From Macrostomum lignano (taxonomy: Eukaryota), in the NCBI GenBank assembly GCA_002269645.1, contig NIVC01002574.1:96805-160804 (forward strand): a DNA stretch of 64,000 nucleotides, written 5' to 3'. The notes under the pieces were generated by a model. It searched no databases. It was not told where the DNA came from and saw only the letters and a list, made by a program, of their open reading frames with translations. Position 1 is the stretch's first letter, and the number at the start of each line of letters is the position of its first letter. Both the position numbers and the translations under genes were made by a program. Of the stretch, positions 31,259 through 64,000 are shown one piece after another.

Positions 31259-31263
<5 letters not shown>

Positions 31264-34425: not shown

Positions 34426-34427
34426 TA

Positions 34428-34857
34428 ACTGGATGGGTCACTCAGGCATATATACTCGTACTTAGTAGTAGTAAAACAGCTTTCTACTTTCAGTTCAGTA
34501 GCAAAGAATACGTAAGCTAATTTTATAAAAATAAAGTCAGCTGAAATGACTTTGATAAGTTTAGAAGCCCCAAGCTTGCAGGCGTAAACAACTTGCTAAT
34601 TGGTTCAGCAATAATGCACATTGGCCAGTCCACTGAAATGTACATGGCAGCTTTAAGGTGTAATTCCGAGAAAGCCATAAAAATTGGGGCGGGACGGGGG
34701 GGGTGTGTGGAAAGGCGCGATTGGAGGGTCTAAGCTGGGTTGGGGGTAAGAGGCGATAAATGAGCCTTGGCGTTAAAATATACATTAAAATGCTTTTTTA
34801 ACTTACTACTGAACTAAAAGTAGCTAACACGCAAATGTGCTGAGTGGCCCATCTAGT
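34428..34857. mobile_element. MITE copy A, 430 bp, TIR ACTRGATGGGYCACTCAG, TA flanks (Tc1/mariner-type)
   Basis: TIRs at both ends; inverted homologue of 37819-38243. Confidence 0.8.
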
Positions 34858-35800: not shown

Positions 35801-36658
35801 ATGGCCTCATCGGTCGTACCGTTCAAGTGTTACTATGGCAACGAGATCCGGCGCCTCAGCCTTGCGGGCCAAGCCACCTACGCCAGCCTGGTGGAGCAGC
35901 TGCAGGCCGTCTTCTCCATCGCGCCAACGCAGCAGCTGCGGCTCCGCTGGCAGGATGAGGAGGGTGACAGGGTCACCATGACAACCAATGCCGAGCTGCA
36001 GGAGGCCATCCGCAGCCTCGCCGCCAGACGGGACGGCGGCTCCGGCGACGCTGTCAAAGTCTTCATCAGCGTCGGCGACCCGACGGTCGTCCACGAGGGC
36101 GTCGTGTGCGATGGCTGCGAGTCCGGCGTGACGGGCCAGCGGTTCAAGTGCCTCCTGTGCCCCGACTTTGACCTCTGCTCGGCCTGCATGACAGGCGGCA
36201 GCCACAGCCAGCATCCCATGCTCCTCATCAGGCGGCCTGACGACCTCCCGGCAGCTCGCTGCTTCCGCCGCGGTCCCTGCGGCCGGGGACGATGGGGCGG
36301 CCCGCGGTTCCGCGACTTCTTCGCCAAGGCTGCCGAGGCCGCTGCAGCCGCCGCCGCGGACTTCGAAGGAGCCGCCACCGCTGCCACCTCCCAGCAGGCC
36401 GCTCCGCCACCGCCGCCTCCGCCCGCCGCCACCTCCGCCGAGGCGATGGCGACCGACGAGCGGCCGGAGGAGGCCGCGGCCGCTGCCGCCGGTCGCCATG
36501 ACAACAGCGGGGAGATGCCGGACCCGCGAGTGGCTCGAGCGCTGGAGCACATGCAGGCCATGGGCTTCAGCGATGACGGAGGCTGGCTGACCCGTCTGCT
36601 GCTGGCCAAGGAGGGCGACATCTGCGCCGTGCTGGACGCCATCCGGCCCGTCAAGTGA
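35801..36658 (+). CDS. SQSTM1: Sequestosome-1/p62 homologue, 285 aa, intronless (PB1, ZZ, UBA)
   Basis: PB1 (FKCYY..EIRR..WQDEEGDRVTM), ZZ (HEGVVCDGC..RFKCLLCPDFDLCSAC..H..H), UBA (DPRVARALEHMQAMGFSDDGGWLTRLL..GDI..VLD). Confidence 0.93.
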   Translation: MASSVVPFKCYYGNEIRRLSLAGQATYASLVEQLQAVFSIAPTQQLRLRWQDEEGDRVTMTTNAELQEAIRSLAARRDGGSGDAVKVFISVGDPTVVHEGVVCDGCESGVTGQRFKCLLCPDFDLCSACMTGGSHSQHPMLLIRRPDDLPAARCFRRGPCGRGRWGGPRFRDFFAKAAEAAAAAAADFEGAATAATSQQAAPPPPPPPAATSAEAMATDERPEEAAAAAAGRHDNSGEMPDPRVARALEHMQAMGFSDDGGWLTRLLLAKEGDICAVLDAIRPVK

Positions 36659-37208
36659 CGGCCCAGCATCTGAGTGCAGGCTTTCGTGGTGAACTGCAAC
36701 TTCGCACGGCTTTGATGCGAACTCCTCATGCTAATCTGCTCGAAATTTGACCTTCTCGCCAGCTGTCATATCCAGCAATATTGTACTGTACGTGTACTTA
36801 AGTACATATAGCTATCAAGTTAGCTTCTGCAATGCCTTCTGTTCTGCGTTAGCACATGTGCGAGCGTACAATGCAAATTTGCAGACCGCGATTTTTTAAT
36901 GTTTTGACATAGTGGTTTTCATCCAGTTACTCGTAAGATGAATGCTATTATTATTTTAAGATCAATTTGAATAAGTACAGGATATGCTGTGTGCCTGTAC
37001 ATGTACCTAGTACCTAGAAGCAAAAAACTTTGGATCAAGGAAATATACGAGACAGTAATTCAAATTGGTTTACATTCGAAAACCTTTTGCCCTATTGATT
37101 TTTCTTTTAGAATGTAACACATGTACATGTACGAGCTCGTAATGAGTTTTCACTTCTATATAAAAATCTGAGAACTTTTTGAAAAACTGAGAAAAACACA
37201 ATGCAGGA

Positions 37209-37558
37209 CAGTGGCGTAGCCAGGAATTTCAATTGGGGGGGGGGGCGGTTGGCCTGGCTGGCCATGCCGTATGCCATTGCCACTTTTGGCGCCGCAGGCA
37301 CTCATTTTGGCGCCGCAGGCACTCATTTTGGCGAAGCAGGCACTCATTTTAGCGCTGCAGGCACTCATTTTAGCGCTGCAGGCACTCATTTTAGCGCTGC
37401 AGGCACTCATTTTAGCGCTGCAGGCACTCATTTTAGCGCTGCAGGCACTCAATTGCCTCATGGTTTTTGGTACGCTCGTACCCGCCGCGCCCAACCCCAC
37501 CCCCCAGGCGATGAGGGGGGGGCGGGGCGGCCCCCCCGCCCCCCTGGCTACGCCACTG
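37209..37558. mobile_element. hAT-type MITE, TIR CAGTGGCGTAGCCAG, 8-bp TSD ATGCAGGA, internal 21-bp tandem repeat
   Basis: Perfect 15-bp TIR; ATGCAGGA at 37201-37208 and 37559-37566. Confidence 0.9.
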
Positions 37559-37818
37559 ATGCAGGACGTATTACTGTTGGCTTATTTACATGTACCTTGT
37601 GTGCGCGCACGCTCACCAAATATTGTCACTGCCAGCTATACGTTCATATGTTATACATGTACCAATTGTTGTACATCATGCTTTGTCTCGCGTTAAAACT
37701 TAAACTGAGTCGATTCTGGGATTTTAAGAAACTAGAAAAAAACAAAAAAATATATACTGTCAATATGTCTTTTTGCTAATAAAAATGGTTCTTAATTGAA
37801 ACCACAGATACTAGAATA

Positions 37819-38243
37819 ACCAGATGGGCCACTCAGCACATTTGCGTGTAAGCTACTTTCAGTTCAGTAGCAAGTTAAACAGAAGCATTTTAATGTATTT
37901 TTAAAGCCAAGGCTCATTTATTGCTCTTACCCCCCTCCCCCACTTAAACCTCCAACCGCGCCTTTCCACACTACCCCCCTCGCCCCGCCCACCCTAATTT
38001 TTATTGCCTTTCTCGGGATTCCAGCCTAAAGCGGCCACGTACATTTCAGTGGACTGGCTAATGTACATTACTGCCGAACCAATTAGCAAGCTGTTTACGC
38101 CTGCAAGCTTGGGCTTCTAAACTTATCAAAGTCATTTCAGCTGCCTTTATTTTTATAAAATAGCTTATGTATACTTCCTTGCTACTGAACTGAAAGTAGA
38201 AAGCTGTTTTACTAAGTATATATGCCTGAGTGGCCCATCTAGT
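37819..38243. mobile_element. MITE copy B, 425 bp, inverted relative to copy A
   Basis: TIR ACCAGATGGGCCACTCAG...CTGAGTGGCCCATCTAGT, TA flanks; internal sequence is the diverged reverse complement of 34428-34857. Confidence 0.8.
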
Positions 38244-39511
38244 TATTTTAGTATCTGTGATTGAAACTAATGAATTTGATGCATACAAAAAATTAAATTT
38301 TGTTAAATTACAAAAGCTTATTTTACCGATCATTAATTTGCGGGCCACCTCTAATGTACATATACACGCAGTTACTCAACTAAAATGTACTTGACAGTGA
38401 CCATTGTACTTTGTACGCTGGGAGAACTACGCACACATATGTATAAAAAATTAGGTCCGGTCAACAAATGCCTAGACGCACAGATAAAAGAACAACTTCG
38501 AAAAAACTTGCAACAAACAAAACTTTGTTTTTTTGTCGCCGGATTGACTGTCGCCGGATCGTCTTCTTGTCGCCTTTTTGACTAGAAAGCCCAATAGTAG
38601 AAAGTACCAAATATTAACTAGAACTGTTTCCAACTCAAGCAGGCCAAATAAAATTCAGAAAAATTCTAGGCTTAAGTAATCAGAATCCCCAAATTTACTT
38701 ATTCTCACGGATCTTTTTTAAGGTTAATTGTTTGTTTAAATGTGTCACTACTGACTCGATTATTTTAAAAGCTTTGTAGCAGAAAACTTTATAAAGATCG
38801 AGTAAGCTGCATTTATAGTAAATTAAAATTACAAATGGACAAATTCGCATTTAGTATTGACTTTTAATGCTAGTCTAATTTCTACAATAATTGCGAACTA
38901 AAGACAATTTTGCTCCCCGTATAAATTTACCAAACAACGTCTTTCGTTGACATTAATTGCGTAGAAAATTAAAAACAAATAAAAATTTGAAAGATTATCA
39001 TGAAAATTATTTTCCTGAAAGTGACAGTGTGGAGAATGTCTGTTCAGTATGCATTTTTTTGCTTTTTTAATTTATTCTTTTTTAAGTTTAAATAAATAAT
39101 TACGGTAGCAGTTTTTAACCATCTGCTGTATAAATCCTGGCCAGATTCATTTGTATTTAATATATCAGTAGTCATGTCAAGCAAATGAATTAGTATTTAT
39201 TTCTTCTTCTTAACTTTCCCAAATGTCCATAGAAATTATTGTAGCTTATTGTATTTAGCTTAGACTCAGACAATATGTTTTAATTGACTAAAATTTTCAC
39301 TAAAAACTCTTCAAAAATGAAACTTAAAAAAACAATAGGAACTATCAACTATCAAGAAAGTTAATCAACTTTCTTGCTTAGTTGATGCATCCTGAATTTA
39401 TTGGAAAACTCTGCTAAATACAGAATTAACCCAAAAAGAGGTTCAGATCAACAAGCATCAGTGTAAAAGATACAATACTTTCATGCTCCACCGCACTGCT
39501 ATCCGTCTCGC

Positions 39512-45943
<6,432 letters not shown>

Positions 45944-45944
45944 A

Positions 45945-46699
45945 GGTGTGACAGTGTGGCCATAGACTAATGATGTGTGAGACAGTTTGGCCATAGAATA
46001 ATGATGTGTGTGACAGTGTGGCCATAGACTAATGATGTGTGTAACAGTGTTGCCATAGACTAATGGTGTGTGTGTGACAGTGTTGCCATAGACTAATGAT
46101 GTGTGTGTGTGTGACAGTGTGGCCATAGACTAATGATGTGTGTGACAGTGTTGCCATAGACTAATGGTGTGTGTGACAGTGTGGCCATAGACTAATGATG
46201 TGTGTGTGACAGTGTGGCCATAGACTAATGATGTGTGTGTGACAGTGTGGCCATAGACTAATGATGTGTGTGACAGCGTGGCCATAGACTAATGATGCGT
46301 GTGTGTGACAGTGCGGCCATAGACTAATGATGTGTGTGTGTGACAGTGTGGCCGTAGACTAATGATGTGTGTGTGTGACAGTGTGGCCATAGACTAATGA
46401 TGTGTGTGTGACAGTGTGGCCATAGACTAATTATGTGTGTGTGACAGTGTGGCCATAGACTAATGATGTGTGTGTGACAGTGTGGCCATAGACTAATGAT
46501 GTGTGTGTTACAGTGTGGCCATAGACTAATGATGTGTGTGACAGCGTGGCCATAGACTAATGATGCGTGTGTGTGACAGTGCGGCCATAGACTAATGATG
46601 TGTGTGTGACAGTGTGGCCATAGACTAATGATGTGTTTGTGTGTGACAGTGTGACCATAGACTAATGATGTGTGTGTGTGTGTGTGTGACAGTGTGGCC
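45945..46699. repeat. About 30-bp minisatellite (GTGTGACAGTGTGGCCATAGACTAATGAT)n, interrupted by the Polinton
   Basis: Direct reading; last unit stops at GTGGCC. Confidence 0.95.
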
Positions 46700-47008
46700 A
46701 GTAGTATAGAAATAGACGCTTCTAGACCCAGAGCACTTTTTTAATGACCGTTTTAAGGGTCTAGAGGGGGGACACGGGGGGTAAATAAAAAAACACATCT
46801 AAACACCATTAATACATCTAATCACCCATAATCACCCCTAACAATAAAAATCACTTCCCAACACTTCCAAAACACTCCCCAACACTCCCCTCGCGTCCCC
46901 CCTCTTAAGACCTTACAAACGGTCATTAAAATAAGGTCTGATCTAGAAGCGTCTTTTTCTATACTACTACTCTATAACCCCTTGCCCGCGCCGCAGGCGC
47001 GAAGGGTC
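46700..47008 (+). repeat. Left terminal inverted repeat (about 309 bp) with an internal foldback
   Basis: 46981-47008 is the exact reverse complement of 63973-64000; starts AGTAGT. Full TIR length is inferred. Confidence 0.8.
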
Positions 47009-47025
47009 TTTTTCTGTTACTAAAA

Positions 47026-47340
47026 ATGACCCGAGTTTACACCTTTTCTGTTAGTGATACTTTTGAGACTGTTGCTAAAAATGCAGAGATAATAAAACAA
47101 CATATTTTGAATGGAATAATTGATGAAGTTTATTTAAAATATGACGACAAGCACGACCTAAAACTTTATCCATTAGAGCTAGATGAGATGTATGATTTAG
47201 AACAAGAGGGTGAGTTAATATTTCAACTTGGAGATTATTTAAATTCGGATGATTGGGAGGTTAGATCAACAGATTCCGAATCAACAAATAGTTCATATGA
47301 AACCAGTGATTCAGAGAATGAAAGTGAAATTTTTATGTGA
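47026..47340 (+). CDS. Polinton hypothetical protein, 104 aa, acidic C-terminus
   Basis: Open ORF with TAAAA-ATG start; family not recognised. Confidence 0.6.
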   Translation: MTRVYTFSVSDTFETVAKNAEIIKQHILNGIIDEVYLKYDDKHDLKLYPLELDEMYDLEQEGELIFQLGDYLNSDDWEVRSTDSESTNSSYETSDSENESEIFM

Positions 47341-47356
47341 AAAAAATATTTAAAAA

Positions 47357-47611
47357 ATGAACTATTATTCTATAACAGAAACGACATTTATTGTGAAAAA
47401 TATATATAAAAAAATGAAGGTAAATCGAACCCATGGTTCGCGTGCTTTGCACGATTACTCCTACATCGGAAATGTGCCGATTAATGAACTTAATGAAAAT
47501 TTAAGTTTGATAACAGTTGAACAAATGTCAATAATAATATTAGTAACAATTATAGTAATAATATTGTTTTTGTTTGTTATAAAAAATTTACTACCATGTT
47601 GTCTCAAGTAA
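47357..47611 (+). CDS. Small membrane protein, 84 aa, C-terminal hydrophobic helix followed by PCC
   Basis: IIILVTIIVIILFLFVI; carries an in-frame 30-bp hairpin insertion. Confidence 0.55.
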   Translation: MNYYSITETTFIVKNIYKKMKVNRTHGSRALHDYSYIGNVPINELNENLSLITVEQMSIIILVTIIVIILFLFVIKNLLPCCLK

Positions 47612-47621
47612 TTGTTCGAAC

Positions 47622-49229
47622 TTAGTTCGCTGATATTAGTTGGTTCTCATAAAACGAACCCAATATTTCTTCACCGTCCTTATCAGCAATTATATAGGTT
47701 GTAGGATTGGTATTTAAAACTTTACTGATAGTAAATTTCTCACTTATCTTCCAATATCCTTTTCTTCCTTTTTCAAACTTATCTTTCCATTTATAGATAT
47801 AAACAGAATCACCAACCTTAAAAGATTTCTTTTTATTTTTTTCAAATTTTCCAAAAGTAACTTTAACGTTTTCAGGATTGTTATAAGCTTGTTGAGGAGT
47901 CATCTTTATCGCCGAATGATATGAATTGTTATAATCTTTCACTACGTCTGGTAATATTTTTACCCATTTTTGGTTACCATTAAGACTAAACTGAAACCAT
48001 AATTTCTTACCTAAAGTTCTATTAAATCTTTCTATTAATGCGTTTTTACTCTCTCCATAAATAGAATAAATTTTATTAATATACTCCCCATTCGCGTCTT
48101 TTTTCCTTTCTTCTCCTTTTTCAAAATGATATAATTTATACATATGAGGATTGTAAAATTCTTTTCCTTCGTCAACACACAACCTTTCACTTTTTTCTCC
48201 AAGACTTCTAAAAGCAGCAGCAACCTCCTCTCCCTTTTTGGATTTTAAAGGAACAGCCCACGCGTATCGAGTAAAACCATCTAATATGGTTAAGATATAT
48301 TTATATCCTCTTTCGTTCGGCATCGACATTAAATCAGCATACCAAATTTCATTCTTTTTGAAGTTCATGATTTTTCTATAAAATTTCGGTTTTCGATATT
48401 CTTTATGAAGAATCTTTGCCTCATCAGAACTTAACCCACCACCACTTAACAACAAACACTCAACACAATTATTTCCATGTTGATTATAATTAATTCCCAA
48501 ACCAAATTTAACTTTAGACTGCAAGATCTTTTTAACCATCCACCTAGTTAATCTTTGCCCTACCGATAATCCCTGCAAGTTATCTAATCCTTGAATCATT
48601 TTTTGATCGGCTTCGTGTTTTAATCTTAGCGCTTCCTCGGGCGGGTTCTTATCAGCATCTCTGTATGCTAAGTCATGATAGTATGCCAACCAATCAATTC
48701 CATTTATGGGAATTGAATCGGCTTTTGGAGTGTCATCAGGATTTAATCTCAAATCTAAGCGAGTGCCGGGTAGTTTACCCCCAATCTTTCGAAAGAGGCT
48801 GGAGCACACCTTAAGCGGCGATAATTACCGCCCATCTCCGTCTGCTCTCTGAACCTTCTCCTTATATTTAAAATACTTAGGAGCTTGGCTGCGCATTGCC
48901 ACCGTGTCTTCAAGCTTTTTACCATCGAACCATAGGTTCGCGTGCAAAGCACGATTGGGAAGAGGAGTTACCTCTGTTCCTTCAAAAGATTTCTCAATTG
49001 AAGTGGTACTTGAAGCTGTATGACGGGTTTCACGCAATTTGGAGATGTCGCCACAAATAGTGACTAGCAAGGACATTGCCTTCCTCACTCAGGCCACGGG
49101 TTAACCTGTGAAGTTCATTGATGGTAGGTGTAGTTCCCCTGTATATTTACCAGTAGTAAAGATTGGTGGTAAGCTTGTTAATCCTTTTTGAACATCTAAA
49201 AATCCTCCTTCAAATACTATTTGGTTCAT
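47622..49229 (-). CDS. PLA2 (parvovirus VP1u-like)-integrase fusion, 424 aa after splicing; exon 1 49229-49104, exon 2 48770-47622
   Basis: TAAAA-ATG at 49229. Spliced junction GELHLPSMNFTG|PGTRLD, catalytic YYHDLAY and EADQ; rve triad WYADL / CVDEG / IERFNRTL; Polinton-type C-terminus FKVGDSVYI..FYENQL. Confidence 0.9.
48771..49103 (-). ncRNA. Group I self-splicing intron, IC1-like, 333 nt, no internal nuclease
   Basis: P1 U.G wobble (exon CAGGU with IGS GCCUG); P3 CAUCUCC/GGAGAUG; P AAAUUGCGUGAAA; Q AAUGCGCAGCCAAG; R GUUCAGAGAGCAGACGG; S AAGGUGUGCUCC; P7 G(A)GAGCA/UGCUCC; P8 and P9 hairpins. Removal restores the ORF and the GPG motif. Last base is A, not G. Confidence 0.88.
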
Positions 49230-49713
49230 TTTTAATGTTTAAAAAACATGTTTCTATCAATTTAATAATTTCTAAATATTGGCCACCATATAAAAAATTT
49301 AAAGCAAATTCCCCAGTTAACAAGGTAACTCCATTATCAAATACTTTTTGTACGGGGTTTTTAGTAGTATTATTAATGCAAATATAATATAAATCAAATT
49401 CGGGATTAACATATTTAAATTCTAATAACTTTTGAATATTTCTAAATCGACTTGATGAATTATCTGTGTTATCAGAAGATTTTAACTCTAACGCAACTTT
49501 TCTTTCTGTATGAATTAAATCAATTTTATTTACTTTTTCAAAACCAAAATGTTTAATAGCTAATAATTCATAAAGAGATCCAAGTCTCATTTGTATTGTT
49601 TTAATATGGTTTGAAATTATTAATTCATCTTGAAATATTTTATTTAGTATTCTGTCAGAACCAACTTTATCACAAATAGGCTTACAAAGGTGGTCTTTTA
49701 TTGTTTCATCCAT
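49210..49713 (-). CDS. PD-(D/E)xK nuclease, Eco47II/Sau96I restriction endonuclease-like, 167 aa
   Basis: KTIQMRLGSLYE, IDL..KVALELK, NTDNSSS resemble the Eco47II family pattern (from memory; needs an HMM search). Confidence 0.7.
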   Translation of the reverse strand: MDETIKDHLCKPICDKVGSDRILNKIFQDELIISNHIKTIQMRLGSLYELLAIKHFGFEKVNKIDLIHTERKVALELKSSDNTDNSSSRFRNIQKLLEFKYVNPEFDLYYICINNTTKNPVQKVFDNGVTLLTGEFALNFLYGGQYLEIIKLIETCFLNIKNEPNSI

Positions 49714-49740
49714 TTTATAAAAAATAAATTTAACAATTAA

Positions 49741-50424
49741 TTAAACACCAGTATGTCCAGCAGCTTTCGCAGCAGCTAAAACAAGTTTTCTAGGAGTTTT
49801 AAATCCATCACCAACAGCTGGTTTGTTATTTATAGAATTAACAATCCATTTATACAAGCTGGTATTTTTAACAGCTCCTCCTAAATCATCATAAAAAATT
49901 CTAGCACTTACTAAATCATTCTTAGTATAAAAATCAGGGTTAAACTTAACCCTAGGGTTAGTAATAATTCTATATGCTCCGCCCAATTCTCTATATAGTT
50001 CATTTCGATCTTTATCAACGTTACCAATTCGGTAATTATTATTACCTAAATCTGTCACAGCAATACTAGCTGGTACTCTTGGAAATTGTTTAACTTCTTC
50101 ACCCCTTTCTGCAGCCCTAATCTCTGCACGTCTAATCTCTGCAACTCTCAATTGAGCTTGATCAACATCATAAGCAGGCGGCTCATCCAAAATTTCATCC
50201 TCTTTTGGCTCAGTATTTGTAGCAATTTTTTCCAGAAGATCTTTATCTGTTTTTTCTAGTTCACTAATTTTCCCAGTAATAGGATTAACAAAAGGAGCAG
50301 CAAATCTTTCGCCAGCTAATTGTATTCCTAACTTTCTTTTTTGTAAATTTCTAACAAAATCAGAATATCTTTGCTTCTCTTTATAAATCGCTAACTCTCC
50401 ATCAACGTCCATAAATTGACTCAT
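49741..50424 (-). CDS. Polinton hypothetical protein, 227 aa
   Basis: Intact ORF, TAAAAA-ATG start, divergent from the capsid gene. Confidence 0.65.
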   Translation of the reverse strand: MSQFMDVDGELAIYKEKQRYSDFVRNLQKRKLGIQLAGERFAAPFVNPITGKISELEKTDKDLLEKIATNTEPKEDEILDEPPAYDVDQAQLRVAEIRRAEIRAAERGEEVKQFPRVPASIAVTDLGNNNYRIGNVDKDRNELYRELGGAYRIITNPRVKFNPDFYTKNDLVSARIFYDDLGGAVKNTSLYKWIVNSINNKPAVGDGFKTPRKLVLAAAKAAGHTGV

Positions 50425-50458
50425 TTTTTAACATAAAAAACTTTTTTAACTTAAAAAA

Positions 50459-51931
50459 ATGGCTGAAACAAAAACTATGTGGAGTGATAAATTTCATTTC
50501 AAAAAGCACCGACAGTATATTAATGAGGTCAGAGCAAGAGATTTAAATTATACCCTACCAACAAGTGATAATTCAAATAACTTTACTACTGGAACGGTAA
50601 CTTTTGACATCGGCGCAACCAACACTATATTGGATATGAAAAATGCGTTTTTCCGCGTTAGATGGTTGTATACTAGAAATGATGGAACTGCTCTTGCAGC
50701 CGGAGATATCGCAGATCGATCCGGAATAATAATAGAAAATGATTGGTTTTATAAATGTTTTTCCCAAGCTCAACTAACTGTTAATGGTGCTGAGGTTGAG
50801 ACATCATCAAACCCCGCAGAGATTAATGGAGTTTTGAAACATTTAAATTATACTTATTTATCAAAACAAGTTGGTGATAATGTTGGGTGGATGCCGGATA
50901 AAGGTAACGGTCAAGCAGTAGTTTTCCCTAATGTACAAAACGCAGCCGGTGCAGATACTGCAGCGCTAATTGTTTACCTTAATACAAACATAGTTCCAGT
51001 TGTAACCACTATGACTAATACAAAAGATATTAATACTGGTTTTATAGATCGTCAGAATAAATTCCCAGTCGCGGTTTTAACCACAGCAACAGCATATGAG
51101 CAGGACTTTTCAATCTTTCCACTATTTGGGTTTTTCTCACCAAATCGGGTATGGAAAGGATTAAAATTTGGGATACAGTTGCAAATATCTGGTGGATATC
51201 AGCCTAGGATACTTTATGGAACCTCAATTTCAACCGATATAGCAGTTCGTATAGATTCAATTCAATTAGTCGTACCAACTATTGAGGTAACAGCCCCACT
51301 TTTAAAACACATCGATAATCAGTTAACGCATGATCAGGAAATATTTTATTTGAATCGTCGACATTTTATGCGAACCATTAATAATAACCAGGATTCATTC
51401 CAGTGGCAAATACTGACATCAAAACGTCGGGTGAGATATATTTTTGTTTGGTTTAAGATAACAAATAGAAGGAGTAAAAGAGCAAATGGGGATTTATATT
51501 GGCTTCAATCCGGTGCCATAGCAGAACAAGCAGCCACCGCAACAGACAATGCGGCTGCAGCTATTAACGAGTTTAATGTTCAGAATATCCGCCTGCAGGT
51601 TGATGATCAATATTATCCGGTTAAAGACCCCCTAAATTTAAATATAGCAAATAATAATGTTAATGATTTTATAAAATATTATCAAGATTATGCCAAAAAT
51701 GAAGCGTATGCCGTCCCTCAGTACACACCCACAGAGTTTCTAAACATTCATCCAGTGGTTGTTTATGATCTAACGGCACAGAAAGAAAACGTAGCCAATA
51801 TTGGACTTAATTATATGTTAGAGATTAATAAAACTGGTAATCAGGCAATAGACGCACACGTATTGTTTCTAGAGGAATATATGTCAATTGCTAAAGCTGA
51901 TGGCACGATTGTTCGGGACGCGCCACTTTAG
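50459..51931 (+). CDS. Major capsid protein (double jelly-roll, Polinton PY-like), 490 aa
   Basis: Size, beta-rich pattern (TVTFDI..LDMKNAFFRV, FSQAQLTVNGAEVE, HPVVVYDLT, AHVLFLEE) and position before ATPase, penton and protease. Confidence 0.8.
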   Translation: MAETKTMWSDKFHFKKHRQYINEVRARDLNYTLPTSDNSNNFTTGTVTFDIGATNTILDMKNAFFRVRWLYTRNDGTALAAGDIADRSGIIIENDWFYKCFSQAQLTVNGAEVETSSNPAEINGVLKHLNYTYLSKQVGDNVGWMPDKGNGQAVVFPNVQNAAGADTAALIVYLNTNIVPVVTTMTNTKDINTGFIDRQNKFPVAVLTTATAYEQDFSIFPLFGFFSPNRVWKGLKFGIQLQISGGYQPRILYGTSISTDIAVRIDSIQLVVPTIEVTAPLLKHIDNQLTHDQEIFYLNRRHFMRTINNNQDSFQWQILTSKRRVRYIFVWFKITNRRSKRANGDLYWLQSGAIAEQAATATDNAAAAINEFNVQNIRLQVDDQYYPVKDPLNLNIANNNVNDFIKYYQDYAKNEAYAVPQYTPTEFLNIHPVVVYDLTAQKENVANIGLNYMLEINKTGNQAIDAHVLFLEEYMSIAKADGTIVRDAPL

Positions 51932-52015
51932 TGTCGCAGTGCAAAGCACGTCGCGCCATTGTAAAATGAGTGCAGGTCTCCGACCGTCGCGCCTATTTAA
52001 ATTATTTCTTTAAAA

Positions 52016-52809
52016 ATGGTAAAGGCAAAACACAATAAAATATTTCCAAATGATCCTTTTCTTTGTTTAGTAATCGGAGGATCAGGTAAAGGAAAAACAC
52101 ACTTTGTTACGATTTATTAACAACAGATGGAATGTTAGACTATAATAATTTAATAATTTATACTAATAAACCTAGAATAAAATATTATGAATTTCTTAAA
52201 CATGGATTAAAAAACAAATTAAAAAAAGATGTCTTGTTTAGAATGTTAAGAGCATATGAGCAATATGAGGATGATGACGAACCGCGATTTAATCTAGCAG
52301 ACATTGAGGATTTATGTAAAACAATGGCACAACAGCCAGAAAACATCACCGATCGCCCCGAAGGGTCGCGGACTTCGTCCGATCGAGCCCCAACAATTAC
52401 AATATCAAACCGATTAACTTATGACAAAATTCCAAAAAATGATAAAACACTAATTATATTTGATGATTGTATTAATGACGGAGATCAAGAATTGCAAAAG
52501 GAAATTTTTGTTAGTGGTAGAGGAGATGGAATTGGAGCTTTTTATCTTACTCAATCCTTTAGAGAATTAGAATCGATTATAAAAAAGAATGCTAGCTGTT
52601 GTGTAATGTTTGATTTAGATAACTATGATCTACAAAATATTCACGCGAGATTTAATCCTGGGTTGGATACAAAACCATTTAAAAGTATGTGTAAAAAAAT
52701 TTGGGATGATAGCCAATACAAACATATTTATATCAATCCGAGGTTAGAAAGGAAACATAGAATTTTAACAAATTTGATAAAAGAAGATAATGAGGAAGAA
52801 GAGACATAG
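52016..52809 (+). CDS. A32/FtsK-like packaging ATPase, 1-bp frameshift near 52108
   Basis: Walker A GGSGKGKT from ATG 52016, Walker B LIIFDD, FYLTQS and IIKKNA motifs. Confidence 0.85.
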
Positions 52810-52829
52810 CACAATTTCCCACTATAAAA

Positions 52830-53628
52830 ATGACTACAAATTTAGATACTATAAAACAATTGGTAGATCGAACTAATTCAAAATTTAGTACAACCTTACA
52901 GTTTATAATGACAACCAGTGAACAACGTATTCAATTGCGCGACCCGTTACAACTTGATCAAAGCCTAAGTTATCAAATAGGTTTGATACTATTTTCGGTT
53001 TTTAACATGCCTCAATTAATTAATGCAACAAATAATCAATTTAGATATTCTAAAGATTCCGGAGCCAATTGGACAACATTTAGCGTTAACCCAGGAGCGT
53101 ATAGCTATACTGATTTGAATGCTTATATAGAATGCTTATATAGAAGGAGAATTAACATCTAACGGCGATTGGGTATCAGGCGCAATTGTTATAGGTGTTG
53201 ATTTACCATCTGGCAGATTCACACTATCACTAGGATCCGGATATCAGGTTGATTTCACAATTGCAAATTCACTCAGAACCATACTTGGATTTAATTCTCG
53301 AATAGTTACCACATCAAGCACCGGCGATACAGTTGGAAATATTGAGGGTGGTGTTAATACAATTAATATAACAACCGACATATCAAACGGCGGTTATATA
53401 ACAGATAATAATGGAGTTTTGGTTCAACGTGGAATTATTTATTCCATCCCATTTCTTGCTGTTCCAATTGGAGAGAAAATGATTGTATCACCTCAAACCC
53501 CAATATATTACCCATTAAATCAATATAATGTTCAATCAATTTATATTAGGATTGTAGATGAAACCGATAGATTAATAAGTTTTGGTGGGCAATCAATAAC
53601 AGTAATTTTACGTATAAAACAGGTTTAG
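52830..53628 (+). pseudogene. Minor capsid protein (penton) disrupted by a 13-bp tandem duplication GAATGCTTATATA near 53117-53142
   Basis: Removing one copy joins the two ORFs; C-terminus IIYSIP..PIGEKMIVSP..IYYPL..IYIRIVDETDRLISFGG is penton-like. Confidence 0.8.
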
Positions 53629-53672
53629 CCGAACCAAAGGTTCGAGGACATCGTCCGTTTCCCATAGTAAAA

Positions 53673-53882
53673 ATGGGTAATCGAACAACATGTTCGCGTG
53701 CAAAGCACGATAATAATAATAATTTACTAAAAAAACAATCAGAAAAAGTTAAAAAAGCTGAAGATAATTACGAACTAGAACTAGCAAAATTAAGGCAGTT
53801 ACAAGCTGATAAAATAAGAAAGGAATTGTTAAAACCCACACCTACGAAACTAACTAAAACCAAGAGTTTTTCAGGAACATAA
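53673..53882 (+). CDS. Small basic protein, 69 aa, possible N-myristoylation (MG)
   Basis: TAAAA-ATG start; in-frame hairpin insertion. Confidence 0.45.
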   Translation: MGNRTTCSRAKHDNNNNLLKKQSEKVKKAEDNYELELAKLRQLQADKIRKELLKPTPTKLTKTKSFSGT

Positions 53883-53883
53883 A

Positions 53884-54327
53884 ATGACCATGACGTGGGA
53901 TGATTTTAAACAAAGATATGGAACAGACACAACAAGCAATATCGAATTAACAAATTGGGCGCGGCAGTTAAAAATAAAACCATTCAGATGTGTGATGCGG
54001 GATGAGATAAAAGACTTACCACAATATGGATCTTACATTGTCAACATCGAAACTACAAAAGAAAACGGGGCTCATTGGTCGGCAGTTTATTCCAAACCTA
54101 AACTTGTTTATTTTTTTGATTCATACGCGCTTCCTCCGTTACAGGAAATAAAAGATAAATTTAATCATACTAAAAATCGTTTATGTGGAGATCATCACGA
54201 ACAGTTTCAAACCTTTGATAAAAGTTATTGCGGACAAGCAGCGTTATATTTTTTATATCGACTTTCGAATGAAGCTCGTGTAAACCACAAAGTATTTAAG
54301 ACTATCATGCAAAGCATGCGAACCTAA
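53884..54327 (+). CDS. Adenain-like cysteine maturation protease, 147 aa
   Basis: GAHW (His), FFDSY (Asp), QFQ (Gln), YCG (Cys). Confidence 0.9.
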   Translation: MTMTWDDFKQRYGTDTTSNIELTNWARQLKIKPFRCVMRDEIKDLPQYGSYIVNIETTKENGAHWSAVYSKPKLVYFFDSYALPPLQEIKDKFNHTKNRLCGDHHEQFQTFDKSYCGQAALYFLYRLSNEARVNHKVFKTIMQSMRT

Positions 54328-54364
54328 GGTTCGATTTTAGACTCTATAAAATAGACAGTAAAAA

Positions 54365-56236
54365 ATGATATTTTCTGGAACACCCTCATGGAACGGAACA
54401 ACAAGTACTGGTGGTGGTACGTCTGGTGGAATAAGTGTTACCTTCGGAGATAATCGATATATTAATGAAGATGAAGGTTATAAAAAAAGTGAAGTTGATA
54501 CTAAACTAAATTTGAAACGGAATGTTGCAGATTCCTATACCAAAACTGAAATCGATACTTCATTAAATCTTAAAAGAGATATTAGCGATTCATATACAAA
54601 ATCAGAGGTTGACACTGGGTTAAATTTAAAAAGAGATATAACTGATTCTTATTCTCGAACTGATTCTGATTCGCGTTATGTTCAAGCCACCGCAACCGGA
54701 ACTTTAGATATGGATAACAATCGAATTATAAATGTTGCAATTACAACGAATAACTCGGTAGTTGATAAGAACTATGTCGATAATCAGGTTGGTAGTCGTA
54801 ACGGCAATATCAATATGAATAATTTTAAATTAACAAATTTATTATTTGGAACAGAGGCCACAGACTCGGTCAATTTAGGGCAGGTCAACGCTCGAGCTAA
54901 TGTAACCGACGCCGATATTTTTGCCACGCCGCTTACATCAAATACTTCAAATCCAGATGTTGTTCTTACAGCATCCGAAAATACCAACGATGCTTTTCGA
55001 GTTGGAGATGGAAGCCTTGCGACACAATGGTCACCAAATACCGGAACCACAACCAATATGGAAATTCAATTTGAATTTTTAGGTTATAATCGAAGAATAA
55101 ATGAATTAAGAATCACAGGCAGCGCAACTATTGATATTCCATCGGGATGGTCGGTTCGTGCAAAAAATGTTGCTACCGATGCATGGACGGTATTACGAAC
55201 GTCGGGATCACCAATTCAAGCAACTTCATTTGCGTTAACTAATTTAACGGTTAATTTTTGGAAATATTATAGCGTTTTATTCCCAACTGGTGGCACCGCT
55301 ACACAACCTATCGAGGTTCGTCTAATACAATTATTTGAACACCGAGTTGAAATTCAAGATCTTAATTGGCCAAATGAAATACTATCTGCTACCCCGCGAG
55401 CGTACGTAGATCAGGTAGCAACTCCAACTTCAAATGGTAGAATGTCTGCCGGTGATAAAAATAAATTGGATAATATTCCCGCGATTGATGCCGCATTATT
55501 CGAGCCAGTAATTTGTAATTGGACTGGATATCAAAATCCAACAACCGCTGGAGATATATATCCAGTTGGTTCTTTAATTGGCGACGCTTCTTATATCGAT
55601 TATCAAAATGGAGCTAGAATTACTCGTGAAACTGGTGGAGTAAGTGGGGCATTACAATTCAATTTCACACATTTTCAAAATATATCTGCGTCTTTCTATT
55701 TCCGAGTCGCTAATTCTACAGGAGATGGTGCAGATGCGGTTTGGTTTTATGCATATTGTCACGAACGCCCAACAAGTGAAGGTGGGACTGGATTAACAAC
55801 CGACGCCGGATTGATAGTTTTTGCAAGTGAGTGGCATGATAAATTTGGCGTTGTATGGAGTAATAAAAAATCAGACGGATCAAGCCGCGCGGATGTTAAT
55901 ACTGACGCAGATCAAACGGTAGATTATGCAAATATTGATAACGGCGATTGGCATTTATTTGAAATTAATATTTTAAATCAAAGGGTTTGGTATCAATTAA
56001 ATTCATACAATGTTTCGGCCGATTCTTATACCCTCATTGGGCAGAACGTTTTCACATATGATAGTGGCACTTGGGGAACGTTGGATAAGACTGGAACCCT
56101 TATGGGTTTTGGTGCTCGAACTGGAGGATCGGATGCTGCACATTTTATTCGTGGCGCTGGCGTTTGTGGTAGCACATCGTTTGGTTATGTTTTTCCCTCT
56201 ACTGCTTATTTGGAAAAACCTCCTACTCAAATATAA
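54365..56236 (+). CDS. Fibre/receptor-binding-like protein, 623 aa
   Basis: SYTKxEVDT repeats, NMNNFKLTNL and MSAGDKNKLDNI fibre motifs, discoidin-like segment, C-terminal L-type lectin-like GDGADAVWF..GFGARTGG..H. Confidence 0.7.
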   Translation: MIFSGTPSWNGTTSTGGGTSGGISVTFGDNRYINEDEGYKKSEVDTKLNLKRNVADSYTKTEIDTSLNLKRDISDSYTKSEVDTGLNLKRDITDSYSRTDSDSRYVQATATGTLDMDNNRIINVAITTNNSVVDKNYVDNQVGSRNGNINMNNFKLTNLLFGTEATDSVNLGQVNARANVTDADIFATPLTSNTSNPDVVLTASENTNDAFRVGDGSLATQWSPNTGTTTNMEIQFEFLGYNRRINELRITGSATIDIPSGWSVRAKNVATDAWTVLRTSGSPIQATSFALTNLTVNFWKYYSVLFPTGGTATQPIEVRLIQLFEHRVEIQDLNWPNEILSATPRAYVDQVATPTSNGRMSAGDKNKLDNIPAIDAALFEPVICNWTGYQNPTTAGDIYPVGSLIGDASYIDYQNGARITRETGGVSGALQFNFTHFQNISASFYFRVANSTGDGADAVWFYAYCHERPTSEGGTGLTTDAGLIVFASEWHDKFGVVWSNKKSDGSSRADVNTDADQTVDYANIDNGDWHLFEINILNQRVWYQLNSYNVSADSYTLIGQNVFTYDSGTWGTLDKTGTLMGFGARTGGSDAAHFIRGAGVCGSTSFGYVFPSTAYLEKPPTQI

Positions 56237-56252
56237 AATATTTCTATATAAA

Positions 56253-56552
56253 ATGGCTTTTAGTAGAACTCCATCGATGCGGCAAAATAATGTTATTATT
56301 CCTATTCCTAAACAAGAATCAAATATAAAAACATTCAAATCTCATACCAAATTTTTATTTAGTACTGTAAATGTTCAGGATAATAAGAAGCTTCAAGAAT
56401 TAATTAAGTTATTAAAAAATCATATTATACTTCAAGAGTTTTGGAAAATTGGATTTAAATGGGAGAAAAAAGAAAGAATCACTCCAATACAATACCTATT
56501 AAGCTCCGGGCAAATACCAAAGAGCGTGGGGAATTCATTTTGGTGCTATTAA
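56253..56552 (+). CDS. Hypothetical protein, 99 aa (ATG at 56253)
   Basis: TATAAA-ATG start within the listed ORF. Confidence 0.5.
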   Translation: MAFSRTPSMRQNNVIIPIPKQESNIKTFKSHTKFLFSTVNVQDNKKLQELIKLLKNHIILQEFWKIGFKWEKKERITPIQYLLSSGQIPKSVGNSFWCY

Positions 56553-56564
56553 AAATAGACGAGA

Positions 56565-57204
56565 ATGTCGGTATCTGAAGCAGATAAATGGGAACGCGAC
56601 CGGTTCAACCAACGTAAAGGTCACATGTTAAGTAATGTTGATCGAATAAATTATGATTATGATTTATATAGTAAAAAAGTAAGAAGAGTTTCAAACCATA
56701 TAAGAAATATGGACTTTTTCAATATTGGATTTGGAAGCTTATCAATGTTATGTGTAATCGTTTTAGGTATTTTACAATCTATTCCAACTCTTAATTTATC
56801 TCAATTATTTTTAGGTATTTCAATTGGGTCAATATCAGGTTTTGAATTGATCAGGAACTTATCAATACTTTTAGCAATTAAATTATATCTTAAAAAAAGA
56901 AAGGAAAAATATAAATCATTAAGAGATGTTGCCAAGCAATATAAAAATCAATTATATTTATATGTGCAAAAAAATATTGGATGACGGAGAGATAACGATT
57001 CATGAATTATCAACCGCGGTTGAATTATATGAAAAATATTTAAAAGATAGAAATAGAATTTTAGATGTTGAAACTTTTACCGATATGGAATTAAAAGAAT
57101 TACGTTTGGACAAACCCAAAGCTCCACCTATAGAAACATTAGGTATTTACGAACCTGAAACTATTGCTACTGGGCACAAAGCCCGCGGTCAGGAAGTGCT
57201 GTAG
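56565..57204 (+). CDS. Two-TM Polinton accessory protein, frameshifted in an A-run near 56970
   Basis: Two hydrophobic helices, then KEKYKSL..LDDGEIT..YEKY pattern. Confidence 0.6.
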
Positions 57205-57238
57205 AACTTAATGTTGTTTAATTTATTTAATGCATATG

Positions 57239-57700
57239 TTATATATTCTTCCCAAAGTGGTAACTCTCTTCTGATCTAGGTTTAAATTTTTTATCAATAC
57301 ATAAAAATTCCAATGACTTTTTCAATAACATTTCGTTAGGTATGTTACCTATCCTTATAAACTTTGTATTCTCTCGAATAAGAAAATTGAAATAATATCC
57401 AACTAAAATTAAAATCCTTTCAGAGTCTTTCGAACTTAATCCCTTTCCTTTATTTAAATGGAAAAAGTTATTATATAAATAAACATTATTTCCGGGAATT
57501 AAAATTGGATCAGAAATGTCTCTTGTAAGATTTCTTAAAATTGTGTTTTTAAAATAGTAATATGAGTTTTCAATCTTTTTTGTTTTTTCAAATTGATATA
57601 TTTTAGAACATGAATAACACATATGATATATATCTCCGTTTGCTGTTTGCCCTCTGTGCATAGTCACATTACATTTATTACAAACATAAATGTCTTTCAT
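57239..57700 (-). CDS. Hypothetical protein, 153 aa, N-terminal CxxC..CxxC zinc ribbon
   Basis: CNKC and CYSC. Confidence 0.55.
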   Translation of the reverse strand: MKDIYVCNKCNVTMHRGQTANGDIYHMCYSCSKIYQFEKTKKIENSYYYFKNTILRNLTRDISDPILIPGNNVYLYNNFFHLNKGKGLSSKDSERILILVGYYFNFLIRENTKFIRIGNIPNEMLLKKSLEFLCIDKKFKPRSEESYHFGKNI

Positions 57701-57726
57701 TTTTTTGTTATTTTTTTAGATTAAAA

Positions 57727-58054
57727 ATGGAGAGCTGGTTCAAAACCGATTCTAATGTGATTAATTATCTCACACCCAATATGTTGGAGAATAAAGAATA
57801 TAATATTGTATGTTTGAGACAGGTTAAATTTATTGGACTTCAATCATATTTTTACAATTAGATGGGCAAAAAATTTTATGTCTAAGCGGAGATGATGTTA
57901 AAAATTTTCCTGTTTTAGTTATTAATAAACCTAAAGCGTTTGTTATGAAATACAGCAACGAGGGTGGATTGCAATTTAAACTAAAACAAACAAATAATAA
58001 AAAGAGTGATAGGACTGTAAAATTGGCGGCTGTTTGGGAGGATGACCGAATAAG
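57727..58054 (+). CDS. Probable small frameshifted ORF (MESWFKTDSN...)
   Basis: TAAAA-ATG start; continuous only with indels. Confidence 0.3.
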
Positions 58055-58073
58055 TTAAATTTTTTATAAGAAA

Positions 58074-58412
58074 ATGGATACGATAAAAATCCTTATCACT
58101 AAAGAGCGTGAACTTAATGATATTAATAAAAAAATAAATATAATTATATCTCAGAAATATCATGAGTATGGGGACGATATGTTTCCCATCCGATATGAGA
58201 TAGATAAAAGAAAACGTTTTTTAAGACAAGATATTGTTTATGCTGAAATAGTAATTGAAATTGAAATAGATAGATTGGTTAGAAAAATAAAAAAACTTAG
58301 GAAAAAAATAAAGGATTGTTTAAGTTACCCTGCCGACTGTGAGGATAATTGGTGCTCAATAATATATGAAATTGAAATGTTAATGATTTGCTCAAACAAT
58401 TACATGCTTTAG
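58074..58412 (+). CDS. Hypothetical protein, 112 aa
   Basis: Intact ORF. Confidence 0.5.
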   Translation: MDTIKILITKERELNDINKKINIIISQKYHEYGDDMFPIRYEIDKRKRFLRQDIVYAEIVIEIEIDRLVRKIKKLRKKIKDCLSYPADCEDNWCSIIYEIEMLMICSNNYML

Positions 58413-58538
58413 TTTTTTACAGACCGATAAGTAATTTTTCTGTTAATCTCTTCCAGTTATTCAAGACTTTTTCCTTATTTAATTTTTTAAGTTCTTTTGG
58501 AAATGTTGAATAATAATTATCTATATCTTTTTCATATT

Positions 58539-61500
58539 CTAGAAATGTATTATATTCACAATCACATTCGATTCACAATCACAATCGTAATAATAATTAT
58601 TTATTGCCGCTTTGTATTCATTATATTTGCTTATTATATCTTCTTTTTGTTTTTTATCTTTTATCATATTTTTTATCTCTTCTTTTAAACCATATGGATA
58701 TGTTTTAATTTTATCATCTAAATACTTTTATCATCAAATGGACTTAATGTTTTTTTATCTGTCTCGATGACAAACATCTGATGCTTATCTGAATTTAATC
58801 GATATTGTGGAGCATGATAATTTTCAATTGTATTAAGGTAATCTAAAAGTACGTTTTTATAATCATCAAATGTTATCTTTTTTACTGCTGCTCTTGATAC
58901 CCCTTTTATTTTTTTTACCTCTCCCTCCTGTCCTAAAACCTTAAATGCATAGCATTTTGATCTTATTGCTATAAACTCGGTTATGATTTTGCTATTTAAT
59001 TCATCTTTCATTTTAAGTACAACTTTTTTATTTTGATCTGATTTTAAAGGATGGTTATCCGGATAGTCGGAGGTATCCAATGTATCCTTAATTTTTTCCA
59101 TATCTTTATAGACATCGAACCTTTGGTTCGCGGACTCCGTCCGTCATCTGTTTCAACCTTAAATACCAAACTGTCGGTGTCTGCATATATTGGATAGTTA
59201 TCTGGCCATGTTTTATTTATAACATCATAATAATATTCATACATTACCAGCTTTGCATAATCTAAAACAACCATTCCAATAAATATTGGTTTAAGAAATT
59301 TTGTTGTTTTATTTCTCATATGAATACCCATAAAGTTATCATCAAATTTTATAAAGTCTTTAAAGTTAGGTTTTGAGAAATATTTCTTTGCTTTATCAAT
59401 ATCCTTTTCTAAATGGAATTGGGTTCTATCTCTAATATTTTCAACCGTTTTTCCATAAAAAGCATTATTCATTAATTTCCAATAATCTTTCTCAAAATTT
59501 GTTTTTGACATCTGTCTCTGATTTGAATTAAAGTCAATATATTTAGCTAACCAATCTTCCTCAATAAACGATATTGTTCGATGTACTTTAGACACTTTTA
59601 ATCCCTGCTTTTTCATAAAATTGTAGAAGCTTATAATGCACTACATAGTTTTTCTTATCATGTAAATTTAATATTAATTTTTTTGTTGCTAGATGTTTTG
59701 CATTATCTACTTTAAGATAATCTTTTTGTGTTTGTGATAAATCATCTTCATTAACTGAACAATGCTCTGGAGCTAAAGGATATTTATATGTTTTTGCTTT
59801 TGCTTCCCGAGTATATTGCAAATCCACTTCTACGATACAGCCCCTTCCTTCGGGAATATTTTTGTAATAATCGGGGTCATCTTCCCATTGGAAATCAGCT
59901 ATTGGTAATTTTTGTTTCATACAACCACCGTATAAATTGTTTGCATCTAGATATAATACATATGATGATTTTTCTTTTTTATTATAATTTGGTAGATATT
60001 TATTATTTACTTTAGTATATCTATCTCCTAGTACACCCGAGAATCCGCCGCGAATTCCTCTCTCAATCATTAACAACATATCATGATCAGTTAGTAAATC
60101 AATCTTAACATCTGTATGTTTCAAACCACAAGCCCATGTTAATCCGGTGCACTGAAACAATATGCGGGATCAATTTTAAAATTCTCATATGTATGATTCC
60201 TAAAGTTTTCAAATGCATCAGCTAATAGGAGAACATCTGCTTTAAGATATAGATTATGATAATCTTTAAATGTTTTACAATTAAAGTATTTCCATACTTT
60301 TTGAGCGTGTTCATAATCCGATTCACTTATGTTTGTTTGTGATAATGTTGAATAAAACTTTTCAATTGGGGGTAATTCGGTATGAAAAAATACGTCTTCA
60401 GATGTTACATATTCATATGGGTAGATGCCCTTACGAGTTAATAGCATTAGTTCTTCCTCGGATAGTTTTTCTTTTTGAAACGATTCAATAGATTGGAAAG
60501 TTTTTTTTACTATTTCTAAATCCCATGGTTTTGGAACTAATGATGAAACAACATTTGCTAAAGATGTTGATAAGAATCTCAAGGAATCTAGAAAAACTAG
60601 ATGGGAGTATTTCTTACCATATGTTATTGATATGTAATTTTCTGATGTTTTAGGTAATATATTTATTTCATATTCATCCTTTCCTAAATGAAGCAATTCT
60701 CGAACTAAGAAATGAAAATCATATCCGGAACCATTATGAAAAAATACTGGTATTTCCTTACATCCTTTTCCTTCTTTTGCATTACATGATCTACATGCTG
60801 CCCCTCGATAATTTCCTGTTAGATGACAATGTTCTCGTATCTTATTATTCTTACTTAAATGTCTTTTGCACATAAAACAATTTGTTGCATTTTTATAATT
60901 GTCTCTATCCTTATTTGTCATATTAATATTTTTTGATAATTTATCATATTGATTTTGAATATATTCAAATACATTTACTAATGATTCTGCCATGTGCTTA
61001 GCTGCATCATTACCGTGGTAAGTAATCATCCTTGATTTAAATATATGATCAGCTACGAGTGTACATATATACAATAACTATTCGGAAACTGTTGTGCCAA
61101 TTTTTTTGTGCATTCACCGTCATCAGATACCGTCTGTGATTCTTTTAAGGGAACATTTGTTGCTTCAAAATCAGCATATATTACTATTGGTTTTTTAACT
61201 GCCATATAATGTTGTTGGAACTTTAGGGTTGCATCTTCAGATGCTGGCATTATAGCATTAGTAAATTTGTGATCTAAACAAAATCGTTGATGATTTTTAA
61301 GAGCTGTTTCATCCTTTTTAAATGTAAACAATTTCTACATAGTGGATATCTATTTCTATTTTCTCTTAAAAAGAACTAATATCTTTTATGTATATATAAT
61401 GTGTTTCATTTTCGCGCTGCATGTACAAAAGATCGATTTGATCTGGTGCTGTTATATCAGTTGCTGGCTTAACAAGATAACAGTTTTCTTATACCATTCT

Positions 61501-62354: not shown

Positions 62355-62399
62355 TTTATAGAATAAATTTATATAATGTATTTGAATTATTGATTTTTT

Positions 62400-63972: not shown

Positions 63973-64000
63973 GACCCTTCGCGCCTGCGGCGCGGGCAAG
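63973..64000 (-). repeat. Inner start of right TIR (truncated by window end)
   Basis: GACCCTTCGCGCCTGCGGCGCGGGCAAG is the reverse complement of 46981-47008. Confidence 0.85.

Follow-up and report, generated by a model that had tools for sequence, protein, structure and literature searches.

A group I intron that interrupts a Polinton-like integrase gene on a contig of Macrostomum lignano

The window analysed here, the last 64,000 nucleotides (nt) of the 160,804-bp contig NIVC01002574.1 in assembly GCA_002269645.1 of the flatworm Macrostomum lignano, holds a Polinton-like element of ~17 kb next to flatworm DNA. Within this element lies a minus-strand gene for an integrase in which an N-terminal PLA2-like domain (PF08398) is fused to an rve core (PF00665). 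The gene is open apart from a single insert between codons 42 and 43, which splits the PLA2-like domain in its glycine-rich loop, upstream of the HD motif. As judged by a covariance model and by every helix of the core, this insert is a genuine group I intron, and it bears no open reading frame (ORF) of its own. The interrupted gene is composed as follows.

49104 to 49229, minus strand: exon 1 of the PLA2-like/integrase gene, ending in U49104 and 72% identical to residues 1–32 of the relative P0121
48771 to 49103, minus strand: group I intron of 333 nt, family RF00028, with bounds taken from intron-less relatives and from the helices P1, P9.0 and P10
47622 to 48770, minus strand: exon 2 of the PLA2-like/integrase gene, with the rest of the PLA2-like domain including the HD motif, then the rve core

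The insert runs from 49103 down to 48771; its length is divisible by three, and it holds three stops in the frame of the exons. Exon 1 starts with the ATG at 49229 and comprises 42 codons with the last residues NFTG, whereas exon 2 begins at 48770 with PGTRLD and stays open throughout its 382 codons plus stop to 47622. A preliminary description of this DNA had placed a 333-nt minus-strand insert with three in-frame stops between ELHLPSMNFTG and PGTRLD, and its coordinates, length and stops were all confirmed. A search with exon 2 alone as the query returned 457 relatives—nearly all of them from metagenome assemblies—of which 120 were listed, the best being 71% identical. These proteins bear PF08398 followed by PF00665. 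Among the 120 listed relatives, 54 read across the junction (...G|PGT...) without an extra residue and count as intron-less relatives. In P0121, exon 1 aligns up to residue 32 (72% identity) and exon 2 from residue 33 onward (71%), with both alignments abutting exactly. Hence, the exon boundary is 49104|48770.

The covariance search that had been proposed as a check gave a clear answer. The Rfam family RF00028 (Intron_gpI) matches 48780–49113 on the minus strand over the full model (positions 1–253 of 253) with 60.8 bits, compared with a gathering score of 50 bits. The E-value is 1e-14 for a query of 1.1 kb and 1.8e-13 for one of 19 kb, and the match is thus far above chance level. It is the only RF00028 match that the Rfam scans found in the window. 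When all 64 kb were scanned at once at the gathering threshold, zero RNA matches were returned and the intron itself was missed. We rejected this blank as a negative result and attribute it to filter loss, since queries of 1–19 kb score 10.8 bits over the cut-off. As a practical warning, a long eukaryotic query can contain group I introns that escape Rfam at its default filters. A permissive scan of positions 1–45200 of the window found no other RNA family. The G+C content of the intron is 47%, compared with 28–33% for the element. A meaningful ORF for a homing endonuclease was not found within the 333 nt, and such an ORF is not a requirement for group I membership. A blastn search against 50,697 phage records gave no close relative of the intron; the sole match is a stretch of 48 nt in the core with 81% identity to Brochothrix phages.

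The structural elements of the intron are distributed along the minus strand as follows.

49090 to 49108, minus strand: P1 hairpin, in which 49108–49102 (the end of exon 1 and the start of the intron) pair with the internal guide at 49096–49090
49048 to 49089, minus strand: two hairpins between P1 and P3, by position P2 and P2.1, with −14.5 kcal/mol when folded alone
48858 to 49047, minus strand: 5′ strand of P3 and the P4–P6 domain, with helices re-derived from the sequence
48801 to 48849, minus strand: catalytic core, comprising the 5′ strand of P7, the 3′ strand of P3, P8 and the 3′ strand of P7
48771 to 48800, minus strand: 3′ end region with P9.0, P9 and a short tail

The helices follow each other in the order P3, P4–P6, P7, P3′, P8, P7′ and P9, with a pseudoknot of P3 and P7. 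The 5′ splice site bears the wobble pair U49104·G49094 within P1, and the hairpins P2 and P2.1 recur when the full intron is folded. P3 consists of seven base pairs (5′ strand 49047–49041, 3′ strand 48839–48833), P4 of six (49036–49031/48895–48890), and P5 of five (49026–49022/48903–48899), the latter enclosing a branched extension of 118 nt (49021–48904). P6 is paired between 48883–48879 and 48862–48858, and so are P6a and P8 (48832–48817). P7 is formed by the strands 48849–48843 and 48806–48801 with five base pairs and one further pair past the bulged A48848; here, G48847–C48802 would take the position of the guanosine-binding pair. Two pairs of P7 are changed on both strands relative to the Rfam consensus. 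At the 3′ end, P9 joins 48798–48791 with 48786–48779 around a GAAA loop and includes two internal mismatches. P9.0 (48800–48799 with 48773–48772) pairs at two of two positions, and P10 (49100–49095 with the exon 2 bases 48770–48765) at four of six. The overall layout hence combines P2 and P2.1 with a large P5 extension and nothing between P7 and P3′. All group I pairings named in the preliminary description, from the P1 wobble and P3 through P9, form as it stated, and the double-sided changes it had noticed in P7 hold as well.

We infer the splicing steps from the standard group I mechanism. The internal guide would pair with the end of exon 1 (P1, with U49104·G49094), a free guanosine bound at P7 would attack after U49104, and P9.0 together with P10 would place the boundary 48771|48770 in the active site for ligation. 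As no spliceosome is needed for this, a virus can tolerate a group I intron wherever it is transcribed. For the second splicing step, group I introns employ a guanosine at their 3′ end (PMC3679873). The 3′ end at 48771|48770 is fixed alike by P9.0, P10, the protein junction and the relatives, and the last intron nucleotide at this boundary is not a guanosine—a mismatch with the terminal-guanosine rule that went unmentioned in the preliminary description. Hence, exon ligation in the flatworm copy is doubtful and is predicted to be poor or misplaced. The catalytic core of this copy is intact, and it is the second step that would be impaired by the terminal base. The label “self-splicing”, under which the intron had been introduced, is not supported in this form, as the flatworm copy may not ligate its exons.

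The relatives of the integrase also bear on the origin of the intron. The ORF at 47622–48809 of the window begins 13 codons inside the intron and reads from there into exon 2. Four relatives (P0002, P0045, P0124 and P0125) likewise bear a lead-in of 13 residues followed by PGT, and after the start codon 10 of its 12 residues match the read-through of the 3′ end of the intron in the window. Two others, P0008 and P0131, show a different lead-in at the same boundary, with a methionine directly before PGT; the last in-frame codon of this lead-in accordingly ends in G, unlike the copy in the window. Several further relatives begin with a methionine exactly at the boundary. P0002 (interrupted) and P0123 (uninterrupted) share 88% identity, and P0008 (interrupted) and P0132 (uninterrupted) share 94%, with homology starting exactly at PGT in each case. 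At the protein level, the same codon boundary thus appears to be filled in a minority of the environmental relatives and empty in near-identical kin, which would be the pattern of a homing-type mobile intron. From this polymorphism among Polinton-like relatives it would follow that the intron is a polymorphic, homing-type passenger of the virus lineage. To judge from these comparisons, it belongs to the Polinton-like virus lineage and not to the flatworm.

The element that carries the intron is delimited by terminal inverted repeats and contains the following further features.

46981 to 64000, no strand assigned: Polinton-like element, extending to position 64000, where both the window and the contig end
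46981 to 47027, no strand assigned: left terminal inverted repeat of at least 47 nt, identical (100%) to two blocks of the right arm
63803 to 64000, no strand assigned: right terminal inverted repeat arm, cut by the contig end, with one insertion of ~150 nt that holds a foldback
46700 to 46968, no strand assigned: foldback of ~270 bp that separates the host minisatellite from the left terminal repeat and is missing at the homeologous locus
49210 to 49713, minus strand: ORF of 167 amino acids directly upstream of exon 1, which it overlaps by 20 nt; possible PD-(D/E)xK nuclease
50459 to 51931, plus strand: probable major capsid protein (double jelly-roll), open, 490 amino acids; three relatives cover 100% of it
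52016 to 52809, plus strand: putative packaging ATPase gene, broken by a single frame change that separates Walker A from the main ORF
54365 to 56236, plus strand: ORF of 623 amino acids, open, with weak matches to phage tail fibres
58727 to 61926 (outer bounds), minus strand: protein-primed family B DNA polymerase (DNA_pol_B_2), broken, with an internal Endonuclease_7/HNH stretch

A protein-primed polymerase, an rve-type integrase and inverted repeats at the ends, together with a probable capsid protein and a putative packaging ATPase, mark the carrier as a Polinton-like element, in agreement with the preliminary description. The rve core matches PF00665 with an E-value of 1.6e-7 and 31.9 bits, just under the cut-off of 32.6; in three scanned relatives, the score lies over this cut-off for P0123 (39.2) and P0005 (37.8) and under it for P0001 (31.6). 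PF08398 is weak on the exon 2 piece alone and clear in full-length relatives. For the ORF of 490 amino acids, a Foldseek comparison with viral models gave capsid proteins of virophages, MELD virus and giant viruses (E-values 1e-13 to 1e-8), with a query model of low confidence: its predicted local distance difference test (pLDDT) is 51, calculated from four sequences, and the template modelling scores are 0.2–0.33. A model calculated from the single sequence was useless (pLDDT 30) and was discarded. From these models, the ORF probably encodes a double-jelly-roll capsid protein. The ATPase matches Pox_A32 weakly and below the cut-off (E-value 0.005), and its Walker A and B motifs are present on two reading frames, with Walker A in a short ORF ahead of the main one. 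For the ORF of 623 amino acids, relatives are only partial and weak; its tail-fibre matches are in keeping with a report of fibre-like proteins in Polinton-like viruses (PMC12220804).

The polymerase has 12,472 relatives, of which the full-length ones measure 1000–1300 amino acids. Frameshifts affect two genes of the element, i.e., the polymerase, with ~7 relative to its best comparator in tblastn (three to seven depending on the comparator), and the ATPase, with one. Intron-like insertions were considered for the polymerase gene as well and rejected, as its junctions are plain frame changes. The ORF of 167 amino acids matches RE_Eco47II with an E-value of 0.002, below the cut-off, and bears a D...ExK motif; it gave nothing in PDB sequences, NCBIfam, PADLOC or PHROGs. 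Searches of PDB sequences with four ORFs of the element returned no matches, and PHROGs, NCBIfam and PADLOC yielded nothing firm for its small ORFs. Pfam searches of the element's ORFs gave no adenain-type cysteine protease, although divergent forms could escape such a search. The foldback at 46700–46968 could form the outer edge of the insertion or else be a small element in its own right. The foldbacks at the two ends of the element are mutually unrelated and found nowhere else in the window; their plant microRNA-like Rfam matches are spurious and far below the cut-off. Since the host DNA of the window contains no further copies of them, they were rejected as proof that the element resides in this genome.

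The DNA around the element is that of a bilaterian, the flatworm M. lignano, and its best-defined portion is the following.

26733 to 46700, no strand assigned: host DNA collinear with a second contig, including a PB1-ZZ-UBA gene and ending in a minisatellite

The PB1-ZZ-UBA gene at 35801–36658 has a paralogue of more than 90% identity, an annotated M. lignano protein on a contig of 730 kb. Over 20 kb, positions 26733–46700 are collinear at 91–98% with the locus L002 (NIVC01000197.1). Past the minisatellite that both share, L002 continues into unrelated DNA and bears neither the foldback at 46700–46968 nor the element; homology between the homeologous loci ends at 46700, inside a repeat unit. 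Two collinear contigs are expected for the neopolyploid genome of this species, and here only one bears the insertion. The absence of the element from the homeologous contig would fit an insertion in one homeologue. The minisatellite at the insertion site (45946–46700) consists of units of ~33 nt and is common to both contigs. Repeats of 64 nt (~44835–45578) lie inside a G+C-rich ORF with a PKK-like match and are also present on the homeologous contig; in L002, the host repeats are found at 17102–20561. As the contig stops inside the right terminal repeat, only one host junction can be read and the 6-bp target-site duplication expected of a Polinton is unreadable. Of the claim that the intron-bearing Polinton is integrated in an animal-like nuclear genome, the flatworm flank is thus secured, whereas integration is documented on one side only.

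Taken together, we favour the reading that a genuine, ORF-less group I intron lies between codons 42 and 43 of the integrase gene as a passenger of the virus lineage, which was carried in with the element and is probably decaying, rather than being a ribozyme that works for or in the animal. We give this reading a probability of roughly 0.7. Several observations weigh against it. P9.0 and P10 are short, and for each the chance of arising at random is estimated at ~1 in 7. The minimum free energy of the whole intron has a z-score of only −1.9, to which we give little weight because the fold contains a pseudoknot. That relatives share the intron is read from protein sequences only, and both the odd terminal base and the frameshifts could stem from errors of the long-read assembly. 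No spliced or near-identical protein is found among the relatives, the best of which is the one at 71% identity; the protein collection also lacks the element's own ORFs, so the missing spliced protein says little. Finally, the Rfam alignment ends at G48780, nine bases upstream of 48771|48770, and ligation at this in-frame position would add three residues to the protein.

The last point leads to the possibility that the intron is fully active in the flatworm copy and removed from the nuclear transcript, either because the terminal base is an assembly error or because ligation takes place at G48780. An intact core with a score above the family cut-off, an integrase frame that is open on both sides, terminal repeats that are 100% identical over 47 nt and the in-frame alignment end would all agree with this. 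Nevertheless, P9.0, P10, the protein junction and the relatives indicate 48771|48770 and not 48780. G48780 lies inside the P9 helix and would have to serve as 3′ site with neither P9.0 nor P10, and residues at this place in the glycine-rich loop are found in 0 of the 54 uninterrupted relatives. Substitutions are the rarer type of error in a long-read consensus, and no transcript is on record. We consider full activity unlikely. Still less probable is the far-reaching version, namely that a virus-delivered group I intron is transcribed and spliced in a bilaterian nucleus. Such an intron would be without precedent in animal nuclei and, among nuclear group I introns, the first to lie outside ribosomal DNA (rDNA), here in a protein-coding message. 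Removal by the spliceosome as an ordinary nuclear intron, with an incidental likeness to group I, can be put aside almost entirely: two GT-AG pairs from 49105 keep the frame open, but both delete loop residues that every uninterrupted relative keeps, and the RF00028 match is far beyond chance. More broadly, 11 GT-AG, GC-AG or AT-AC pairs with an open frame were tried and rejected, since each deletes conserved residues and none restores the conserved junction—in line with the preliminary description, which had seen no GT-AG solution there.

A different doubt concerns the place of the element itself. It might lie outside the flatworm genome, on a chimeric contig end or in a protist or alga of the worm culture, which would leave an intron in an ordinary microbial Polinton-like virus. 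The published group I introns in such viruses are from protists only (PMC12220804), nearly all relatives found here are metagenomic with none from an annotated animal, and the contig stops in the right repeat, leaving neither a second host junction nor a target-site duplication. Moreover, a minisatellite ends at the join and a foldback adjoins it, which makes this an error-prone place for assemblies. On the other side, the contig measures 160.8 kb, 47 kb of flatworm DNA lie within the window, and collinearity at 91–98% persists to 46700; its loss there, within a repeat unit, is what an insertion would produce. Contigs commonly end in the repeats of multi-copy elements, and the frameshifted genes fit a resident, decaying copy. 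We regard an origin outside the flatworm as rather unlikely, if worth keeping in mind. A further proposal would add to the favoured explanation and not replace it: the ORF of 167 amino acids might encode a free-standing nuclease and help to spread the intron by cleaving intron-less integrase genes in relatives that infect the same host. The intron is ORF-less and yet polymorphic among close relatives, and this ORF abuts exon 1 and bears the weak RE_Eco47II match and the D...ExK motif. With a Pfam score below the cut-off and blanks in the four other collections, nuclease-assisted spread is an improbable addition to the passenger reading.

Organelles, bacteria, phages and some large eukaryotic viruses all harbour group I introns, as does the rDNA of eukaryotic microbes, and according to reviews the nuclear ones reside only in ribosomal RNA genes of eukaryotic microbes (PMC3679873). 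The preliminary statement that they are not established in bilaterian nuclear DNA agrees with this, and our literature search found no report of group I introns in animal Polintons or in a nuclear setting in animals. The closest precedent is a survey from 2025, which reported RF00028 matches of 309–376 nt in Polinton-like viruses integrated in the genomes of protists, i.e., Rhodomonas lacustris (cluster C3/GKS1), Paulinella micropora and Desmodesmus armatus (PMC12220804). These introns are like the present one in Rfam family, size range, an integrated carrier with an rve domain and the lack of a recognised intron endonuclease. In Rhodomonas, they sit in a gene called as a short protein of ~50 amino acids (PMC12220804), and exon 1 of the present gene, with its 42 amino acids, would look the same to a gene caller. 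In contrast to the survey, the present element comes from the assembly of a bilaterian, its interrupted gene can be named as a PLA2-like/integrase fusion, and the filled and empty states of one codon boundary are added; the likeness between both sets is one of description.

Chloroviruses carry group I introns in viral genes, and for phages Bonocora and Shub reportedly described in 2009 a collaborative homing, in which ORF-less group I introns move with a free-standing neighbouring endonuclease. The present case is alike in its ORF-less, polymorphic intron and in a possible nuclease gene that adjoins the interrupted one; it differs in that the nuclease assignment of the ORF of 167 amino acids is below threshold. 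In giant viruses, both integrated and free, group I introns occur in the gene of the large RNA polymerase subunit (PMC10675990)—a similar setting in protein-coding genes and sometimes in host assemblies. However, these introns often bear endonuclease ORFs and reside in much larger protist or algal viruses, whereas the flatworm intron is ORF-less and lies in an element of 17 kb. With the introns of microbial nuclear rDNA, it shares the ribozyme class and the two-step mechanism with an exogenous and a terminal guanosine (PMC3679873), but it sits in a protein-coding gene of a virus-like element and does not follow the terminal-guanosine rule.

For the carrier, nematode and oomycete Polintons with a pPolB2 that bears an HNH domain (PMC10748475) offer a counterpart to the protein-primed polymerase with its internal HNH/Endonuclease_7 stretch. 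Adintoviruses bear PLA2-like genes (PLA2X; PMC8502044) and thus likewise combine a PLA2-like domain of the parvovirus VP1 type with a Polinton-type element; here, however, this domain is fused to the integrase and not to a virion-core-like protein. An intron is described for neither group (PMC10748475, PMC8502044). Set against all these systems, the notion of a virus that carries a ribozyme into an animal nucleus is new in its animal setting, whereas the principle—such elements carrying group I introns into nuclear genomes—has already been published for protists (PMC12220804). To this principle, the flatworm contig adds a name for the interrupted gene, whose product is an integrase with a PLA2-like entry domain, and a filled/empty polymorphism that would mark a mobile intron in this group of Polinton-like viruses. 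It also indicates that such an element, intron included, can reach an animal genome assembly, and it outlines a concrete route for catalytic introns into animal nuclear DNA. Hereby, the intron might serve as a marker for tracing Polinton-like viruses between environmental samples and animal genomes.

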